This document shows, one piece after another, positions 2,497 to 50,770 of a DNA stretch of 64,000 nt. The notes below the pieces were generated by a model. The model made no database searches. It was not told the origin of the DNA and was given only the letters and a program-made list of their open reading frames with translations. How positions within the stretch are numbered: position 1 is the stretch's first letter; each line of letters starts with the position of its first letter. This DNA comes from Podarcis muralis (taxonomy: Eukaryota): contig NC_135655.1 of NCBI RefSeq assembly GCF_964188315.1, forward strand, positions 68,820,001 through 68,884,000, read 5' to 3'. The position numbers and the translations under genes were made by a program.

Positions 2497-3400
2497 ATCA
2501 TAGAATTGTAGAGTTGAAAGGGACCCTAAGGATCATGTAGTCCCAGCCCCTGAAATGCAGAAATCTCAACTAAAGCACCCAACAGATGGCCATCCAACCT
2601 CTGCTTAAAACCTCCAGTGAAGGAAAGTCCACGACCTTCCAAGGGAGTCCATACCACTGTTGAACAGCTCTTACTGTCAGAAAGTTCTTCCTGATGTTTA
2701 GTCAGAATCTCCTACCTTGTAACATGAATCTGTTGGTCCGGGTCCTGCCCTCCAGAGCAAGAGAAAACATTTGGCAGCCCTTTAGATATTTGAAGATGGC
2801 TATCCTATCTCCTGTGGGTTAAACCACAGAGCCTAGGACTTGCCGATCAGAAGGTCGGCGGTTTGAATCCCCGCGACAGAGTGAGCTCCCGTTGCTCGGT
2901 CCCTGCTCCTGTCAACCTAGCAGTTCGAAAGCACGTCAAAGGGCAAGTAGATAAATAGGTACCGCTCCAGTGGGAAGGTAAATGGTGTTTCCGTGCGCTG
3001 CTCTGGTTCCCCAGAAGCGGCTTAGTCATGCTGGCCACATGACGCAGAAGCTGTACACCAGCTCCCTCGGCCAATAAAGCGAGATGAGTGCCGCAACCCC
3101 AGAGTCGGTCACAACTGGACCTAATGGTCAGGGGTCCCTTTACCTTTACTTTATCCTATCTCCTCTTAGTCTCTTTTTTCCAGCCTAAGCATACCCAGCT
3201 CCCTTAACCACTCCTCATAACTGTTCCTTGATAATATTGGTCGCCATCCTCTGCACATGTTCCAGCTTGTCAATATCTTTTAAAAATTGTTTTGCCCAGA
3301 AATAAACATAGTATGCCAGATGCGGTCTGACCAAGGCAGAATAGAGCATTACTTTTACTTCTCTTGATTAGGACACTATACTTCTGTTGACCTGGAATAC
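2497..3400 (-). mobile_element. CR1 LINE 3' fragment, interrupted by a Sauria SINE
   Basis: Begins with the reverse complement of the CR1 3' tail (ATCATAGAATTGTAGAGTTGAAAGGGACC); degraded RT C-terminal sequence continues after the SINE. Confidence 0.8.
2814..3151 (+). mobile_element. Sauria SINE, nearly full length
   Basis: tRNA-like head (GGTTTGAATCCC B-box), diagnostic body, (ACCTTT)n tail; 13-bp TSD TATCCTATCTCCT at 2801-2813 and 3152-3164. Confidence 0.92.
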
Positions 3401-14825: not shown

Positions 14826-14961
14826 CAGGCATAGGCAAACTCCGGCCCCCCAGATGTTTGGGACTACAGTTTTCATGATCCCTGACCACTGGTCCTGTTA
14901 GCTAAGGATGATGGGAATTGTAGTCCCAAACATCTGGAGGGCCAGGGTTTTCCTATGCCTG
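14826..14961. mobile_element. hAT-type MITE (136 bp)
   Basis: TIRs CAGGCATAGG/CCTATGCCTG; 8-bp TSD CTCTAGAG/TTCTAGAG; near-palindromic body. Confidence 0.85.
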
Positions 14962-19690: not shown

Positions 19691-20214
19691 GTGAGTGTTC
19701 AGGCAGGTTAGATGCCATACAAGTATAGTACTTGTTAAACCTATTTTTGTACATTGTGGTGCAATTTGTAAGTTTATTTGGTAAACAGGTTTGGGAGGCT
19801 TTTGACTTGTTTCTAAAATCTGTTGGATTGAGAGTATAAAAATATGTTGCGGTTGTACCCTAAGAAGCCAAACCTCTCTCAATTCACTGTCAGTTTCCTT
19901 TTTTTAAAAAAAATCTATTTGGTTGGATCCAGACTAAATTAATCGAGCTTAGGGCTGTTGTGTGGCATACTTGTTAGAGTATCTTTCACCATGACTACTG
20001 GCTCTGTAAGTTAGGGCAGATGGAAGCTGCAGCCTAGAAGCATCTGGAGGACATCAGGTTAGGGAAGGAGGGCTAAAACAGTCTTAGCCAACCTGGTGCC
20101 CTCCAGCTGTTTTGGACTACAACTCCCATTAGAGCTGTTAAGCATGTTGGACTAGGACTGGGAAGACAGGTTCAAATACCCACTCAGCCATGAAGTTAAC
20201 TGGATGGCCTAGGG

Positions 20215-20701
20215 CAGGGGTGCCCAACAGTGGTGTAGCGTGGGGGGTGCAGGGGGGGCCGGCCACACCGGGCGCAACATCTGGGGGGGGCGCGCGCTTG
20301 CACTCGCAGCTCTCTGCCCCTACCTGGCTCACTCACTCGCTCTCAGTTAGGGGGCGCAAATTACTTGCCTTGCCCCGGGTGCTGACAACCCACGCTACGC
20401 CACTGGTGCCCAAACATTTTTCAAAGAGGGCCAGATTTGATGGAAGTGAATATGCATGAGGGCTGACCAAAGTTGAGCTTTTTTTTAGGATTGAAGAGCT
20501 TTTTGGGGGATGTCCCCCCAAGGTTTATTGACCTTTTTAAAGGATTTGATAGCAATAAATGAATGAACTGCCACAGGGGCCTGATAAAACCGGCCGGAGG
20601 GCCGAATTGGGCCCCAAAGCAGACTTTGGATATGCCTGCCTTAAAACTAGCACAAAATAACCCATATATAAAACACAGTACTTGTTGCTTCTTGTTATGT
20701 G

Positions 20702-20742
<41 letters not shown>

Positions 20743-21643
20743 AAACACGGTACTTGTTGGTTCTAGCTCCTGAAAGCTCTATTGTAAAAGACCTCCAACC
20801 CCTTTGCCACCATCTATTTCCCGAATTCTTCCGTTGTCCCCCTGTTGTTGTCTTTTTATAATATAGCATTCATCAAGAATACAAACAGCAAGTAATGGAT
20901 ACTGGTCACCAGCTACAAAGCGAAATGAGGTGGAAAATAATAGCAGCATGCTAAAATTGTACTTTGGCTTCAGGATCAGTGCTACAAACTTTTCTGTTTG
21001 TTTGTTTTTTGGAGGGGGGGGAGGAAAGCTGCACCCTACTTTGCTAAATTCCGACTTATCCTCATGAGGGAGGTTATAATCCCACCGACACCAGCCCCAT
21101 ATTTTTTCCACCTCTCTGACTTCCCCCTCTCTCATATCTATATCTATATCTATATCGGGGGAGGCAGCCTCGCCTGCACAATAAGCGATAAAAAGAATGG
21201 CGCTGCTGCTGCTGGGCTTTTCTTCGCGGGCTTTCTGCTGGGTGGGGCGGGTGAGGCGGAGAGCGCTCTGCACATGCTCAGGAGACCCCTTAGCCCACAA
21301 TAAACACCCCCCCGGACCCTCAGGAGGCAGCCCGGCCTCTCTTTGCGGCTCCCTACCTGCACTGCTCCCGGACGAGGCTCCGCTGTTCTCCTCCACGGGC
21401 ATCGCGCCGTCGCTTCTGACTCGCGCCGGGTTTCGAACGCCTTGCAGCGCTTCCGGCGGAGTGAGCGGGGGAGGGGGGGGAAACCGTGCGCTTTCCAAAT
21501 ATCGCGAGATAAAAGCGGCGGCTTCGCGGGAAACTGCCGAGACAACAAATCCCTAGACTGGCGGCCGGTGGTGGCTACACAGGCCACATGACGAGGTCTG
21601 GCGGGCCGGATTCGGCCCGCGGACCTTGTGTTTGACACCCGTG
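20215..21643. mobile_element. Non-autonomous composite hAT element (1.43 kb) with CpG-rich cargo
   Basis: Exact 8-bp TSD GCCTAGGG at 20207-20214 and 21644-21651; ends CAGGGGTGCCCAAAC / GTTTGACACCCGTG; no transposase ORF. Confidence 0.85.
20228..20405. mobile_element. 178-bp hAT MITE inserted in the left TIR of the outer element
   Basis: TIRs CAGTGGTGTAGCGTGGG / CCCACGCTACGCCACTG; exact 8-bp TSD GTGCCCAA at 20220-20227 and 20406-20413. Confidence 0.92.
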
Positions 21644-23001
21644 GCCTAGGGTCAATCACTGCCTTGCAACATAACAGGGTTCTTGTGAGGATAAAATGGG
21701 ATAAAGAACCATGTTGCTGCCCTGAGATCCTCAGAGGAAGGGTAGGATATAAACTCTTTGTAAAAGGAAAATGCAAAAGCCTTACTTGCCACTGATTTCA
21801 ATGAGAACTAACTAACATTACTTCCAATCCTCTAAGTGCAACTAACTCACTCTAGGCCCAACCCTATTGGATTAAAGTGACTCACAGTGGAAGGACCCAT
21901 CCTCAGTAATGGAACACATGCTTGGAATGTATGAGAACACAGCTTAAATCCCTAGTTTCTCAAGTTTAAAAGGTTTAAAAGTTTAAAACCATTTACCAGA
22001 GATGAAAGTAGGATAAGTACATATACCAGAAGTTGAAATTCCTTTTTCCAATTGCCTTTTAAAACTTTCTTTCAGCTGTCTCCAGCCAGCTACTTTATAA
22101 TTTCCATTTCACACATTTCTATGTGAATTTAAGCTTGTGCTTTGGACAGGAATGCTTTGGGGACTGACCAAGAAGGGGATTATAGTTAGTACATTGCTTT
22201 TCCTAGCTTAATTTGGGCATGCAGAATCATGTTCTCTTAGAACAAGTGAAAGTATTAAAGTTATTAAGCACCTCTCAATACGCCTTTCCCACACCATCAA
22301 GTAAAGACAATCAGACTACAAAGTTCTGAGATTAAGCAGCAGGGTTACAAACTCAGGGTATAATTTATATAACTGTATTAGAAATATCTATATATTTATT
22401 TGGATAATAAGTATATATGAGTATATATGAACTGAAATTTTTAACTGTTAAGTGTCATAGTGATATACTAAACCCTAAAATAAATAATAATAATGATAGA
22501 GTATTATTTCCAGGCAGTACTGGCACCTCTCATGTATAAATGACAGCCTTTACAATTCTAAATTTGGCTCAACAGAAACTACCCTGAGATCACTAAGAAT
22601 TCTTTGCCATCAGCAATGATTTATTATCACTGTTCTACAGAGGAATCAATTCAGTGACTTAGATATAAGGAACAGGTCACAGAAAGAACGGTTACTTGCC
22701 TGAAAAGAAAATTCAGAAAGGAAAAGAAATTAATACATCCTTCAGCACTATTGATTAATACTTGGTTTCACAGAACAAGCAAAGGATAAGATTTACATAG
22801 TGACTGAACTATTAAGAAGGGTAAAGTGTGAGGGAAGAGCAGGTTATTCTCCGGCTGCTTTAGACAAATTGAGTTGGCAGGGACCCCTTCACCGCACTAA
22901 GGGACCTAACACATCTCATGGAAATATGAGCTTGTGTATGTGTTAGATTGATTCATCATAGCATTTTATCTCTATCTGAACATGTTTCTCTCCCTTTCCA
23001 G

Positions 23002-28912: not shown

Positions 28913-31303
28913 ACATATTTATTATAAACAAGTTTCTGGCCTCATGCTGTGGGACCACCAACTCTCAAACATGAAAACCAGACCACAAACATACAGCAGA
29001 GCAAAATACCCACAGATTCAATCAGGTTATCCGAGGCGCATGCTGCAAGGGGAAAGCAAAAGCTATTACTGGGCATTTGTATTGAATGTTAGTATTCTAA
29101 TGTTATTTATTTATTTATTTTATTTACTTAAAAGCGATTTTATCCCACACTTCATCCCAGTAATGATAGGCTACAACCACGTATGCTGCTGCTGTTGTTA
29201 ATAACTAGCAATTTATCTCCTGGTCATTATATATCAGAACATAGTTATCTTTCTATATGAAACATTTTGATGCTGAGTTCCGGGAGACAAATGAGGGGAA
29301 CTTTTGCAGACTTCTTTCCTACCTAATTATGCTCTCAGGGGAGCATGTTGTCCTGGCTTTTATTTATGGCACTGGTATACTAATGGATCTCAGATATTTG
29401 AACATAGCAAGGGCACCTTATTTCATGTTTTTGTCAACATCTAATTGGCTGCCTTATTTTAAAAGGCGTCATGATGAAAGAAGAATGTACATTGCCTGTG
29501 TTCTTCTGTCTTTCTTCTTCTGCGTAATGAGTAGTGCATTGGCCTTTCATCAGCATGAAAGTCTACTGCCATTTCAGAATCCACTTTTTCCATACTGAGG
29601 AGATATTCTACATTTAGGGTTGGGCTTTTTTTAATGGGTATTAAGCATATTGACAATGCTTCCACCTTGAGTCTCTCACATGATACAGTCAGTTATATTT
29701 GTGCCTTTACAGGATCTAGGCTTAACTGCTACAAACAAAAGTCTTTGCTGGACTTGCTTTATTGAGAGAACAATTCAAGCAAAACTGAATTTTAGTGGCT
29801 TAATTCCAGGCCAGTCGATACTGAATATGACAAAGTCATGGCACAATGCCTCACAACCAAGTAGATACTATAGTAGTCTGACATTTACCTCACAAAGAAG
29901 TTGGTCAACATTTTTCCAGTCAACAAGCACCACTTTTGGATATTCTGACAATATATCACCCCTGGCTACTTATCTGCATAAAGGCTTGACAATTTGAGGC
30001 AGCTTTACTGAAGAGCTTCCAGTCCTAGGCACTGCCTCAGGCAGTGCCTTTATTTAGCTTACTCACAGGACCAGCCTTGGGAATTATGAGCACCTTTCAC
30101 TAATTTCAGTCCAACTGTTCTTGACTTGGAGTAAAGGGTAAGTTTGCTATATTTAACTTAAGATTATGCTCCTACCTCTCATTGTGGGTGGTGTGAAATT
30201 CCATAACACTAATAAACCATCTGGATAAGACAGAAGCCACTCTATTAACAAGACTCAAAATGGAAATCTTTTGGGGAAAGAGGGTCCCCCCCCCAAGATT
30301 TCTGGTTTAACACAACATGTCAAAATTACTGGGGTCCATGAGCAGTGTCTGTGTCACCTAGCAACCAATGTTTCTACCAAGTCCATGTGTCCGTTTGAAA
30401 AAAGAACCAGGCTTCTTTGTCATAAGAGGAAGTATTCTTTTCACAGGGCTTTGCAGGTTATTTCAGGCTGGCGTGCTGGGAAAGTGGTGCCTCTATTTAG
30501 AAACCCAATTACAGGAAACACTGTCAGATAACTGCTCTATTAGAAAATCTTTGTGAGAGACCCTGTCCCTCCACTACAGGAGCACATGATAATAGCTCCT
30601 TCAGAAGCCTCTCTGCCCAACTCCAACCAACATTGTTAGTAGAAATGCAATTTTTATGTGGACAAAAGGAAGGTAGGGTTACATAAGAGCCCTGCTGGAT
30701 CAGACGCAGTGCCCATCTACTCCAGCATCCCCATTAAAATTTGGATTTCCCCTTTCTGAACCTTTCCCAGCTGCTTTTTAAGGAGGAGCAACAAGAACTG
30801 TTGCATTTAATAGCAATATAGTCACCGTCCCCAGTTGGTTCAACAATAAATTCATCTTGTTCCTAGTCCTGGACATCACTTAAGATTAAGTCCAGCTTTG
30901 CTGCCCCTCTAGCTGGTTCTGTGACAGTTGGAAGGTCATGCTCCAAGTTTGCTTTCTGGGAAGGAAGTTTGGAAGCCTACACAAGCACATTTGTCAAAAG
31001 AACTTTTATTATAAATGAGGGAAGGAACGTATCTTTTCTCTAGCATACAAGACTGTATCCTTTCCTATAAAATAAACTAACGCCACTTTTTTATATAATA
31101 TGATCATGAGACATCCAGAAATTAGAAAACAATGTAGCTAGATAACAACATTAATCATTCCCAAAATATAATATTGATTGTCCTTGAATCTTCCGGCCAC
31201 ACTTGCCATCCTCTCCTGTCACGCCAGTATGGTGCTCTACAACCTTTGAGAACTAGTGAGTATGGGCTTACCTTTTGCTTATACAATAGGCTCCCTTGGT
31301 AAG

Positions 31304-31639
31304 GGTAAAGGGACCCCTGACCATTGGGTCCAGTCATGGACAATTCTGGGGTTGCGACGCTCATCTCGCTTTACTGGCCGAGGGAGCCGGCATACAGCTT
31401 CCAGGTCATGTGGCCAGCATGACTAAGCCGCTTCTGATGAACCAGAGCAGTGCACGGAAACACCGTTTACCTTCCGCCGGAGCAGTACCTATTTATCTAC
31501 TTGCACTTTGTGCTTTCGAACTGCTAAGTTGGCAGAAGCAGGGAGCAAGCAACGGGAGCGCACCCCGTTGCGGGGATTCGAACCGCCAACCTTCTGATCG
31601 GCAAGCTCAAGAGGCCACAGTGCCACCCGCGTCCCTTGA
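31304..31639 (-). mobile_element. Sauria SINE, full length
   Basis: Diagnostic body; 13-bp TSD CTCCCTTGGTAAG at 31291-31303 and 31640-31652. Confidence 0.92.
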
Positions 31640-32829
31640 CTCCCTTGGTAAGTTTCCTTAATTTATAGCCCTGTCTAACTTTCCTCAGCTGCTACTTCAA
31701 TTAAATCAGGTGGTGGTCCTTTGAAAAACACAAGGAAGTGTGGCTCAGCTACTGGGCTGAGTTTGTACTCAGTTCCAATGAGCAGAACTTTGAATGGAGA
31801 ACTTAGGTCAGTTTAGGCCCCTAGCAATGGGAATGTTTGTCAGGGGAGTGGACAATGGCTGGATTAAACAGGGATTAAAGGGAGGCTGTGGCTAGATGAA
31901 ATGTAAATTGGAAGTTTAAAAAATATTATAGATTTTAACTGATTTTGAAACAGAACCAAAATCAGAGTTTTTAACTTGGGCTGAGACCTATCCTTACTCT
32001 TTGGTTGATAAGTTTAACCAAAGCTTACATGAGTTGAAATGAAGTTTTTGCAAGTGTAAGTTTACCCTCTAGTTTTAAGTTGTAATTCATACTCTAGTTT
32101 TGAACTGTTTTTCAAAGTGAACTGAAAGCTGTTTTTTAAGTTGAACTAATTTTTAATTAATGCTTAAATGTCTGACTTGGATTGAGGCCTAGCCTTATGT
32201 TTTGCCCATTATTATATAAATTTCTGGTTGCTGTTTACTGCAGGCCCTGCACTGGAATTTAGCTCCTAGCTCACAATGCCTCTGCTGTACCCTATTTTAG
32301 CAGATGAAATAAATAAATACATAAATACATAAATAGAATGAATGAATGAAACACTTACCTTCTTGAATGACTTGATTGTTAATTTAATGCTCTGTCATTG
32401 GGGCTTAGATGCTTCATCAGCTGGGGCTCCTTTCTTGCTCACAGAAGTTTTAGTTTACTCCTTGGAATAGAGATAATTATCCATTTTTCAACATAAAATG
32501 ACCTATAGACATATGAGCTAATTAATCTGGCATTTGCAATATCAACTTCATTATTTTTTCATAGCAGTTTTGCACACACTGAGCTAAAGAACTGTTGCAA
32601 AGGAAGCTTGGGAACTCTGTTGTAGCCTGCCGGCTTCTCTCTGCAAGATAAGGTCATAAGGTGTTTGCAATTGTCCCATTCTGTGAGTTCCAATTAGAGT
32701 TAATTACAAACTTGAGGAGCCCTGTGGCATTTTAAAATGAGGCTTCATGAAGATCTTGCAGCCCATGATATGAGCTGATACAGTACAGGTCAATATTCAT
32801 GCAGCACAATCCTATGTACGGTATCTTTA

Positions 32830-33751
32830 CAGTGGTGCCCCGCAAGACGAACGCCTCGCAAGACGGAAAACCCGCTAGACGAAAGGGTTTTCCGTCGCGG
32901 AGGCGCTTCGCAAAACGAATTTCCCTATGGGCTTCCTTCGCAAGACGAAAGCCCATAGGGAAATCTCCGGGACAGCGGGGAAGCGCAGCGCCTCTTCCCC
33001 ACTGTCCTCGGACCTCCTCCCGCCGCCAGGCTTCGGACGGCTGCTCCGAAGCATGGCGGGGGGGGGGGGCGAGAGGTGTTTTAAAAACCCCGGGACAGCG
33101 GGGGACTTCTCCGCTGTCCGGGGCGATTTTAAAATGCTGCCGGGCGGCAGCGCTGACGCTGCCTTTCTCCGCTCTCCTGGGAAGGCAGGCAGGGGGGAGC
33201 AAAGACTTTCGCCCCCCGCCCGCCTTCAGAAGAGGTCCAGGACCTCTTCTGAAGGCGGGCGGGGGGCGAAAGTCTTTGCTCCCCCCCGCCTGCCTTCAAA
33301 AGCCGTCGGGGACAGCGGAGAAACGCGCCGCGTTTCTCCGCTCTCCCGGGAAGGCAGGCAGGGGGGAGCAAAGACTTTTGCCCCCCGCCCGCCTTCAGAA
33401 GAGGTCCAGGACCTCTTCTGAAGGCTGGCAGGGGGCAAAAGTCTTTGCTCCCCCCTGCCTGCCTTCCCGGGGGCTTTTAAATCGCCCCGGGACAGCGGAG
33501 AAGTCCTCCGCTGTCCCGGGGTTTTTTAAAATGCTGGGGGTGGGAAGAAAAGCCCTTCGTCGTCCCCCCCAGCCTTCAGAAGAGGTCGGGGGACAGACTG
33601 TCCCCGGACCTGGTCTGAAGTCGGTTTCCCTAGGAACGCATTAATTGATTTTCAATGCATTCCTATGGGAAACCGTGCTTCGCAAGACGAAAAACTCGCA
33701 AGAAGAAAAAACTTGCGGAACAAATTAATTTCGTCTTGCGAGGCACCACTG
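32830..33751. mobile_element. Tc1/mariner (Tigger/pogo-like) non-autonomous element with internal foldback repeats
   Basis: TA TSDs at 32828-32829 and 33752-33753; TIRs CAGTGGTGCC(C/T)CGCAAGACGAA; CpG-rich palindromic interior; the overlapping ORFs have no transposase motifs. Confidence 0.9.
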
Positions 33752-40289: not shown

Positions 40290-41230
40290 AATGGATTTGG
40301 GGGAGCGCGGCGGGAGGAAACTACGCCCCAAAAGTAAGATTTCGGCAAGAGAAATAATAAAAGCATTTCACATGAACGCTCTCATCTTAAAACACTTCCC
40401 CCCCCCCGCCGGCAAATCCTCTTGGTTTCGATCGAGCTAACTTTCAAGTAAGCATATTTAAGGTCTGGAGTCTCAATTTTGACGTCCAGTTTCCCAGAGG
40501 AGAAGCGCTGCTCCTTCAGGAAACCCCGCCGAGGCCTTGTCGCGGGGGCTGAGGGGAGCCGCCTCCGTCTCTACTAGCAAAAAGCAGGCGACGGAACTCG
40601 AGTGAGAGACGAAGAGGGCCACACCGCCGGTTTTATCTCCTCGCGTGATTTCGCCGTAAGGCCGCGAGACTGCCCTTCGAGCAGTGGGCGGTGGGAGGAG
40701 AGCCCTTTCCCGAAAAGGAAGGCCCCGCGGCGTCACGTGACGAGGCGCGGACGGGCCCGAGCCTCTGTCGAAGGCGGAAGTCGGGATGGTTCCGGAGCTG
40801 GGAGTTCGCGCCCCGCCTCGGCGGCGATAAGGGGAGGGTCTCTGGGTTGGCTCGGCGCGGGAGTCGGGCATGGCGGCCCCGGGAGGAGCGCGGGCGGCGC
40901 TGTGCGCGCTCCTGGCTCTGGCCGCGCTCGCCGGGCACGTAGCCGGCGAAAAGGTATGCGACGCACGCGACCCCTCCCCGTCCGTTCCCGTGGCGCTCGC
41001 GCTCCCTCTCCCTCCACTGAGTCCGCCCGCTTCCTCTCCAGTCCCCGGAATATCTCTGAATCTAGGAGGCAGCGGCAGCGGAAGCCGCCCTCTCCGGAGG
41101 GTTATGCACAAAAAAGAGCTTATGTTCAAAAGGCCAGGGCTTGTCAAATCCATACATTTAGGGAATAAGGCGTCCCCGCTTCCCCACCACCCGCAACGCC
41201 GGGACTGTCAATCTCACCTCCGTCACTGAC
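40290..41230. promoter_or_regulatory. TMEM9B CpG-island promoter with CLEAR/E-box, ETS and GC-box motifs
   Basis: Dense CpG and high GC; GTCACGTGAC at 40732-40741; CGGAAGT at 40775-40781; CCCCGCC near 40810. Confidence 0.85.
40870..40953 (+). CDS. TMEM9B: TMEM9B exon 1, signal peptide (model: 40870-40953, 42719-42810, 44865-44973, 46361-46495, 48153-48308; 576 nt, 191 aa)
   Basis: GGC ATG G Kozak context inside a CpG island; encodes MAAPGGARAALCALLALAALAGHVAGEK; donor AAG|GTATGC, phase 0. Confidence 0.92.
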
Positions 41231-41744
41231 GCTTGTTTTCTAGTTATCGACGACTTTTAACTTCTGAAAATGCATATTTCTACAGCACTCTTAAAATATC
41301 CCTTAAGCAGAATGCATGTAGGAGCTCTCCTTCAAAAAGAAAAGAAAAAGTGGTAGGGCGAGGTAGGAGGATTGCAAAGCACAGCAGAAAGAATCGGTTT
41401 TCGGACAGGGAGGTTTTTGCAATGTGTTTATCCGATTTACCCCACCCCGAAATGTTTGTCGTTTTCTCATCTCAGATGCCGTGAAGAGCAAAGGGAGGCA
41501 TTTTGCTTAAGCTTATAATTACAAACATGTTCAACTTCGAAATACATTCCACTTAACTGAATAGTATTTGATGTTGACTTGGGCTTGTTGAGAGTTTCAG
41601 TGGCCACCTTTAGTTTTAGCATCATGTTTGTGGCCAACAGCAGTTACTATGGATTTTTATGATGCTTCTAATTCTGACTGCTGTCTTGCATTCCTATCCT
41701 TTGTTCATGTTGTCATCTTGTGTATTTAGACATCTGTAGATGTC

Positions 41745-43859: not shown

Positions 43860-43995
43860 CAGTGTTTCCCAACCTTGGGCCTCCAGCTGTTTTTGAACTA
43901 CAATTCCCATCATCCCTGACCACTGGTCTTGCTAGCTAGGGATGATGGGAGTTGTAGTCCAAAAACAGCTGGAGGCCCAAGGTTGGGAAACACTG
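43860..43995. mobile_element. hAT-type MITE (136 bp, nearly palindromic)
   Basis: TIRs CAGTGTTTCCCAACCTTGGGCCTCCAGCTG and its reverse complement; exact TSD CCTTAGAT at 43852-43859 and 43996-44003. Confidence 0.92.
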
Positions 43996-50092: not shown

Positions 50093-50408
50093 CCTAATTC
50101 TCTTGGGCCTAAACATACTTGGCAAAAACAAGTTTTCTCCCAAAAACCTAAGCTGTGATCAAATTTGCATTTGTGCAATGGTACTTTTAACCACCTCCTT
50201 TCATTTTGTAGCCTCTGGTGCTCCCTAAAAAGCAGCATTATTTTTAGACTGCTTTTCTGCCTGAAAGCCCTTAAAGCAGCTTACAACAATGAAAGCAAAA
50301 TAAATCGCCCCATTACAATTACTGAAAACATAATGCAGCAGAGTATAATAGTGACTGTAGTACCGCAGTAAGGCAAAATAGTCAGGGCAACATGAATTCC
50401 TCAGTGCC

Positions 50409-50770
50409 AAAGGTAAAGGTAAAGGTACCCCTGCCCGTACGGGCCAGTCTTGCCAGACTCTAGGGTTGTGCGCTCATCTCACTATATAGGCCGGGAGCCA
50501 GCGCTGTCCGGAGACACTTCCGGGTCACGTGGCCAGCGTGACAAGCTGCATCTGGCGAGCCAGCGCAGCACACGGAACGCCATTTACCTTCCCGCTGGTA
50601 AGCGGTCCCTATTTATCTACTTGCACCCGGGGGTGCTTTCGAACTGCTAGGTTGGCAGGCGCTGGGACCGAGCAACAGGAGCGCACCCCGCAGCGGGGAT
50701 TTGAACCGCCGACCTTTCGATCGGCAAGTCCTAGGTGCTGAGGCTTTAACCCACAGCGCCACCCGCGTCC
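50409..50770 (-). mobile_element. Sauria SINE, full length, CpG-rich (young), inside an older L2-like relic
   Basis: (AAAGGT)3 tail, intact head CAGCGCCACCCGCGTCC, many undecayed CpGs; CCAAAGG at both flanks. Confidence 0.92.

Follow-up and report, generated by a model that had tools for sequence, protein, structure and literature searches.

Structure and ends of the insertion

The window, that is the whole 64-kb stretch of DNA that was analysed, contains at positions 20215-21643 an insertion of 1429 bp, which splits a SINE spanning from approximately 20130 to approximately 21760. The insertion has three components, namely a 238-bp hAT MITE (with a second MITE of 178 bp nested inside it), 919 bp of non-MITE DNA, and the 86-bp right end of a related MITE. 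The features of the locus are as follows.

20130-20214, no strand: left half of the target SINE, the last 8 bp of which are the left copy of the target-site duplication (TSD), GCCTAGGG (20207-20214)
20215-20638, plus strand: MITE A, a complete non-autonomous hAT element with left TIR CAGGGGTGCCCAAACA and right end ...GACTTTGGATATGCCTG
20228-20405, plus strand: nested MITE of 178 bp with TIRs CAGTGGTGTAGCGTGG and CAGTGGCGTAGCGTGG (reverse complement)
20639-21149, minus strand: low-copy portion of the cargo, rich in AT (GC 0.41, CpG observed/expected ratio 0.30), intron-1-like on the exon model
21150-21557, minus strand: CpG-island part of the cargo (GC 0.64, observed/expected ratio 0.90, both measured over 21150-21600)
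21357-21468, minus strand: first-exon-like segment, with a leader of approximately 66 nt, an ATG at 21402-21400 and 15 codons, MPVEENSGASSGSSA
21449-21533, minus strand: promoter-like motif cluster, with an ETS core, a TCTCGCGAGA-like and an E2F-like motif within 85 bp
21558-21643, plus strand: second hAT right end, consisting of the last 86 bp of a MITE akin to MITE A, with a reverse complement that starts CACGGGTGTCAAACACAAGGTCCGCGGGCCGAATCCGGCCC
21644-21760, no strand: right half of the target SINE, beginning with the right TSD copy GCCTAGGG (21644-21651)

The 8-bp TSD GCCTAGGG is perfect. Other copies of the split SINE in the DNA run X1 have the positions equivalent to 20194-20215 joined directly to those equivalent to 21674-21683, with 25-40 SINE-like letters between the joined positions in the contigs. 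As the SINE is uninterrupted in these copies, the target is continuous and the duplication of GCCTAGGG is real. The hAT signature consists of an 8-bp TSD together with CAG-type TIRs, and the insertion possesses both, with termini of the form CAG.../...CTG, multi-copy ends and no transposase, as is the case for non-autonomous hAT elements. It also has the layout of a compound element, in which a complete element is separated by other DNA from a further end of like orientation, the TSD being found outermost only; what follows the inner right end at 20638 is CCTTAAAA, with no TSD copy. The left end CAGGGGTGCCCAAACA agrees with CACGGGTGTCAAACA, the reverse complement of the outer right end, at 13 of 16 positions with one gap, which is better than its agreement with the inner right end of MITE A itself (10-11 of 16). 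The pairing of the TSD with a second end at 21643, proposed in an earlier note made from the sequence alone, is therefore borne out by the presence of GCCTAGGG on both sides and the continuity of the SINE. The whole 1429 bp is a single hAT unit enclosed by one TSD. A blastn comparison of 20100-21750 with the 64-kb window returned microsatellite matches and one flanking repeat only; MITE A, the cargo and the second end were each found just once.

Without its nested element, MITE A is 238 bp in length (20215-20227 plus 20414-20638). Its family is repeated in X1, where the summed contig depth is 7920, 778 and 2993 over 20436-20636 and falls to 35 in the next bin. This fall from 2993 to 35 at approximately 20637 indicates that the repeated family truly ends at the inner right end of MITE A. 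The left MITE with its own right end at 20638 is thus a complete family element, as the earlier note had described it, but the nested MITE at 20228-20405 had been missed there. The nested element has its own 8-bp TSD, GTGCCCAA (20220-20227 and 20406-20413). The family to which this 178-bp MITE belongs is extremely abundant, with a summed depth in X1 of 2-6 x 10^5 compared to approximately 15 for single-copy DNA, and it is also plentiful in RNA reads, where internal deletion variants (for example with a joint at 20287-20346) are found.

The outer right end stops at 21643 (reverse complement CACGGGTGTCAAAC) and is likewise of high copy number, the X1 depth being 18,649 over 21575-21641, 540 over 21508-21574 and 38 over 21441-21507. 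It is homologous to the right end of MITE A over approximately 55 nt, the inner and outer right ends being approximately 70% alike. A motif G(A/C)GGGCC(A/G)(A/G)ATT recurs in the same orientation at 20426-20437, 20597-20608 and 21601-21612, which places it 30-45 bp from the left, inner right and outer right ends respectively; it could serve this MITE group as a subterminal binding site for the transposase. To the left of the SINE, positions 20088-20129 are occupied by a fragment of a very-high-copy repeat (...GGTGCCCTCCAGCTGTTTTGGACTACAACTCCCAT), which is cut at 20129 where the SINE begins and which continues as CAGCCCCAGCCAGCA... in most genomic copies. This repeat is also present at 14911-14940, 43880-43910 and 43945-43975, with an opposite-orientation pair approximately 35 bp apart at 43880-43975.

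The low-copy interior and its homologous RNA

Steps in depth at 20637 and approximately 21557 part the high-copy MITE segments from a low-copy interior. All the features listed in the earlier note were confirmed as present; the low-complexity tracts of this interior are (AC)17.5 at 20704-20738 within the AT-rich part and (ATATCT)3.8 at 21134-21156, just ahead of the CpG-island part. A direct repeat of 42 nt brackets the (AC)17.5 tract (20651-20692 and 20723-20764); its copies have 81% identity, rising to 88% over a 33-nt core, and it looks like a small duplication about the tract.

Copy number was judged against a single-copy reference depth in X1 of 13-16 (records 1 and 8). The summed depth amounts to 20-77 over 20639-21507 and to 7-50 over the AT-rich part (20639-21149). 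At 21307-21373 it is 38.5, made up of 15.3, 13 and 10.2 from records 6, 5 and 4, these being an exact window contig and two diverged ones. Some differences from the window in the X1 contigs are common to the two paralogues and others are private to one of them, and record 2 is the paralogue contig for the AT-rich part. The genome thus holds approximately three copies of the interior, 4-10% apart and each at single-copy depth, which are paralogues and not alleles; the three are about equally diverged in a star-like pattern. For the exon-like stretch there are at most approximately four DNA copies in X1.

One of the diverged copies is seen together with its MITE ends. A contig of 1136 nt in run X15 (record 14) aligns to 20411-21598 with 47 mismatches and 64 gap letters, approximately 4-7% diverged from the window copy, and it bridges both the junction of MITE A with the cargo and that of the cargo with the second end, with more than 31 nt on either side. 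It has the differences of one of the X1 paralogue contigs, which coexists with the exact window version. Since a diverged copy keeps both internal junctions, the composite was formed once and then copied, and is not private to this locus; the cargo has in this case been copied with its ends, as far as can be viewed over 20411-21598. The unique flanks of the window copy are at zero depth in X15. This second copy of the composite, designated P1, has a depth of 21 in the same run while the window copy and its flanks are absent, which indicates that P1 lies in a transcribed or otherwise enriched region and the window copy does not.

The 451 bp at 21150-21600, already described in the earlier note as CpG-dense, have a GC content of 0.64 and 41 CpG with an observed/expected ratio of 0.90, compared to 0.29 for the whole window, and so exceed all three limits used for CpG islands (length >200 bp, GC >0.5, observed/expected ratio >0.6). 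CpG sites account for approximately half of the listed differences between the copies, and CpGs have been lost from the window copy as well as from others, which suggests from sequence that the copies were methylated at some time. Other CpG-island-grade stretches of the window are found at 32751-33700, 40401-41250, 50351-50850, 31301-31650 and 2801-3150 (GC 0.55-0.74, observed/expected ratio 0.6-1.18). These may be promoters of neighbouring genes, and none of them shows similarity to the cargo.

Three promoter-like motifs lie in the CpG-island part. The first is an E2F-like TTTCCCGC (21533-21526), which is the sole TTTSSCGC in the 64-kb window, where the count of E2F-type matches is below the shuffle mean. 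The second is TATCGCGAGA (21500-21509), the 9/10 match to TCTCGCGAGA that the earlier note had picked out; it is the sole match with at most one mismatch in the 64 kb, and at least one such match arises by chance in 17 of 100 shuffles. The third is an ETS core, GCCGGAAGC (21457-21449), of which the window has one further example. Taken singly, none of these matches is significant, as such motifs arise readily in CpG-rich DNA. Their order and strand would be compatible with a TATA-less promoter.

Downstream of these motifs on the minus strand is the first-exon-like segment with its ATG, MPVEENSGASSGSSA and a predicted donor CAG|GTAGGG, for which the exon ends at 21357 and the GT lies at 21356-21355; these coordinates, given in the earlier note, were rechecked and found correct. 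A homolog of this segment is present in run X18 which, like X15, carries an RNA label that is a guess in the run table. Record 24 of X18 is a contig of 1848 nt with a depth of 197.5, whose positions 6-106 correspond to 21463-21364 of the minus strand, differing by four mismatches and one gap (approximately 95% match). The match thus takes up the terminal 100 nt of the contig, the remainder of which is unlike the window. A depth of 197.5, set against at most approximately four DNA copies in X1 and a depth of approximately 4 for the neighbouring paralogue contigs in X18, reflects RNA abundance. The contig ends 5 nt past the match at 21463, which fits a start site at approximately 21468, at the ETS core. 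At its other side it departs from the window at 21364, 7 nt short of the predicted donor; two of those seven positions (21361 and 21363) differ between the window and the other copies, and these differences may explain the early stop of the match. Record 24 agrees with the second X1 paralogue (record 4) at 21405, 21410 and 21417. As the end of an abundant RNA in X18 is a homolog of the exon, a close relative of the cargo is probably the real first exon of a spliced RNA.

The window copy itself gives a different picture from that of its relative in X18. Raw RNA reads of X24, of which approximately 12% of the run was read and reads were counted from 80% likeness, give zero depth over the cargo at 20637-21440 and approximately one read at 21441-21507, with zero or near-zero depth over the unique flanks. 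The suggestion of the earlier note that the captured promoter could drive antisense transcription at this locus is consequently not upheld in X24, where no RNA reads were placed on the window copy. Paralogue P1 is found only in unspliced contigs (depth 21.4 in X15 and approximately 4 in X18), a pattern that read-through would produce and initiation at its own promoter would not. The window copy itself seems to be carried along silently and has lost some of its CpGs.

Pfam analysis of six interior ORFs gave no domain and no transposase remnant, and two word-based protein searches with the exon frame were blank, the exon of 15 residues being too short to register (in a phmmer test, a perfect 15-residue match scored 17.7 bits with an E-value of 360 at large-library size). 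A possible origin from thymidylate synthase, considered on account of the 'MPV...' start, was set aside, the read-through frame showing none of the conserved sequence of that enzyme. An Rfam match to SCARNA7 over the (CA)n tract has 24 bits compared to a gathering score of 65 and was taken to be due to chance.

Origin of the interior

The explanation considered best, and one which could equally well prove right or wrong, is that the insertion is a compound, transposase-less hAT element carrying the 5' end of a host gene. A hAT transposase would have used the left end of the complete 238-bp MITE and the right end of a truncated related MITE, situated in the same orientation approximately 0.9 kb away, with both ends and the interior becoming mobile as one 1.25-kb unit. 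Insertion of this unit in the SINE would have given rise to the 8-bp duplication, and the 178-bp MITE would have landed in the left arm afterwards. The composite has been copied at least once more. The cargo would most likely represent the 5' end of a transcription unit on the minus strand, comprising approximately 90 bp of a TATA-less CpG-island promoter, a first exon of 112 nt and the first 716 bp of intron 1. Insertion of hAT elements is known to favour the 5' ends of genes, and two insertions may therefore have bracketed the 5' region of a host gene. The earlier note had likewise proposed that two hAT ends moved a host promoter and exon 1, into a site which it took to be intron 4 of NRIP3. 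Of this, the copying of the unit is established and the promoter and first-exon reading is supported by the X18 RNA, while we infer the use of two ends, the host-gene donor and the direction of transfer.

Capture of filler DNA during the repair of an excision gap within a single element is an alternative route to the same structure, which on its anatomy would fit as well as the mobilisation of two elements; as the left end pairs better with the outer than with the inner right end, a single element with internal filler is equally compatible. Several findings count against a host donor by whichever route. Among the sequencing-run contigs matched, no host-type donor locus without hAT ends was found, and neither paralogue looks better preserved than the window copy, as a parent gene under constraint might be. 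X15 lacks the RNA homologous to the exon and X24 is almost devoid of it, so that this RNA is not a ubiquitous housekeeping transcript. In addition, the promoter adjoins the transposon end and reads inward, as it would in an autonomous hAT element.

This last feature leads to a second explanation, in which the hAT lineage itself supplied the interior, as the 5' arm of a spliced autonomous or domesticated hAT, and the abundant RNA is the mRNA of a transposase or of a hAT-derived gene. Here a MITE would have been located inside intron 1 of a large element, and use of the 5' end of the large element together with the far end of the MITE nested in it would have produced a short derivative. The transcription start would be approximately 175 bp from the end at 21643, directed inward and followed by a short first exon and a donor; the resulting order of TIR, 86 bp of subterminal DNA, approximately 90 bp of promoter, exon 1 and intron is what would be expected of a spliced hAT. 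The restriction of the homologous RNA to some samples is also in keeping with this. Vertebrate hAT genes can be spliced, as shown by Tol2 with its four exons, although the fit of Tol2 to the exon model is a loose one, its exon 1 encoding 117 aa and not 15 (PMC8151067). Moreover, there are approximately 1200 copy-equivalents of the right end, of which only two paralogues besides the window copy reach the promoter, no interior ORF has a transposase domain by Pfam, and a promoter of E2F/ETS/TCTCGCGAGA type is typical of host genes. Derivation from the transposon's own arm is considered rather unlikely, and less probable than host capture.

Less probable again, and regarded as doubtful, is that every copy of the interior is transposon-borne, its source being lost or unrecognisable, and that the RNA is chimeric or non-coding, starting in another composite copy that provides a novel promoter and first exon at its landing site. 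The roughly equal, star-like divergence of the three copies would agree with this, and transcribed sequences carried by Ds elements of which all copies are transposon-borne have been described in maize (PMC3260210). Neither the window copy (no X24 reads) nor P1 (unspliced only) shows any sign of the use of its own promoter, however, which argues against such an origin of the RNA. As for the stretch not being a unit at all, with independent nested insertions or a mis-assembly and 8-mers that match by chance, this is highly improbable and in practice refuted: the left junction does lie within high-copy repeats and is unspanned by any single contig listed, but the two SINE halves join exactly once the insertion and one copy of the duplicated 8-mer are taken out, exact-match contigs of X1, an independent DNA run, cover 21038-21602 and 21620-21899 (the latter being record 8, of 4801 nt and with no differences), a second diverged copy retains both internal junctions, and at least 14 DNA runs from five studies contain 63-83% of the words of the window version.

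Relation to known elements and significance

The capture of gene fragments by cut-and-paste transposons is well known in plants; in the hAT superfamily it is uncommon, and vertebrate cases are scarcely documented. Plants possess Pack-type TIR transposons such as Pack-MULE and Pack-CACTA, and like these the present insertion is a non-autonomous TIR element with a TSD that has multiplied with a gene-derived fragment (putative in this case), differing in belonging to another superfamily and in having only two or three copies. Macrotransposition, or alternative transposition, of Ac/Ds is known from genetic experiments in maize. It similarly employs the left and right ends of two elements in direct orientation and leaves a TSD at the outer ends only, whereas for the present element such an event is deduced from anatomy alone.

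The nearest documented parallel is the maize element Ds-l4-483, in which a regular element is succeeded by extraneous transcribed DNA and then by a truncated second copy, with a TIR and TSD at its end (Du et al., 2011, PMC3260210). Both belong to the hAT superfamily and have a complete short element followed by extraneous DNA, a second end and an outer TSD. In maize, however, the second end duplicates the first and a TSD copy is also present after the inner end, while here the similarity of the right ends is only approximately 70% and a TSD copy is lacking after 20638. The filler of maize Ds2/Ds-l4 elements is occasionally derived from genes, introns included (Du et al., 2011, PMC3260210). The present case differs from the Ds elements in its vertebrate host and in a cargo consisting of a promoter and first exon instead of internal exons.

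A broader proposal, put forward tentatively and with slightly less than even confidence, is that hAT elements of the wall lizard repeatedly acquire CpG-island promoters and first exons. The present element would then be a vertebrate Pack-hAT in which a host promoter of E2F/ETS type, exon 1 and the start of an intron have been copied to at least two new loci with the CpG island largely surviving, the cause being insertion at 5' ends combined with the use of mismatched ends.

If the cargo is the transposon's own 5' arm, the insertion would be an ordinary deletion derivative, useful only for tracing the autonomous partner of an abundant family of lizard MITEs. If it is host-derived, the element would illustrate how promoters and first exons can be distributed, ready for use, across a vertebrate genome, and promoters transplanted in this way could create antisense or chimeric transcripts.
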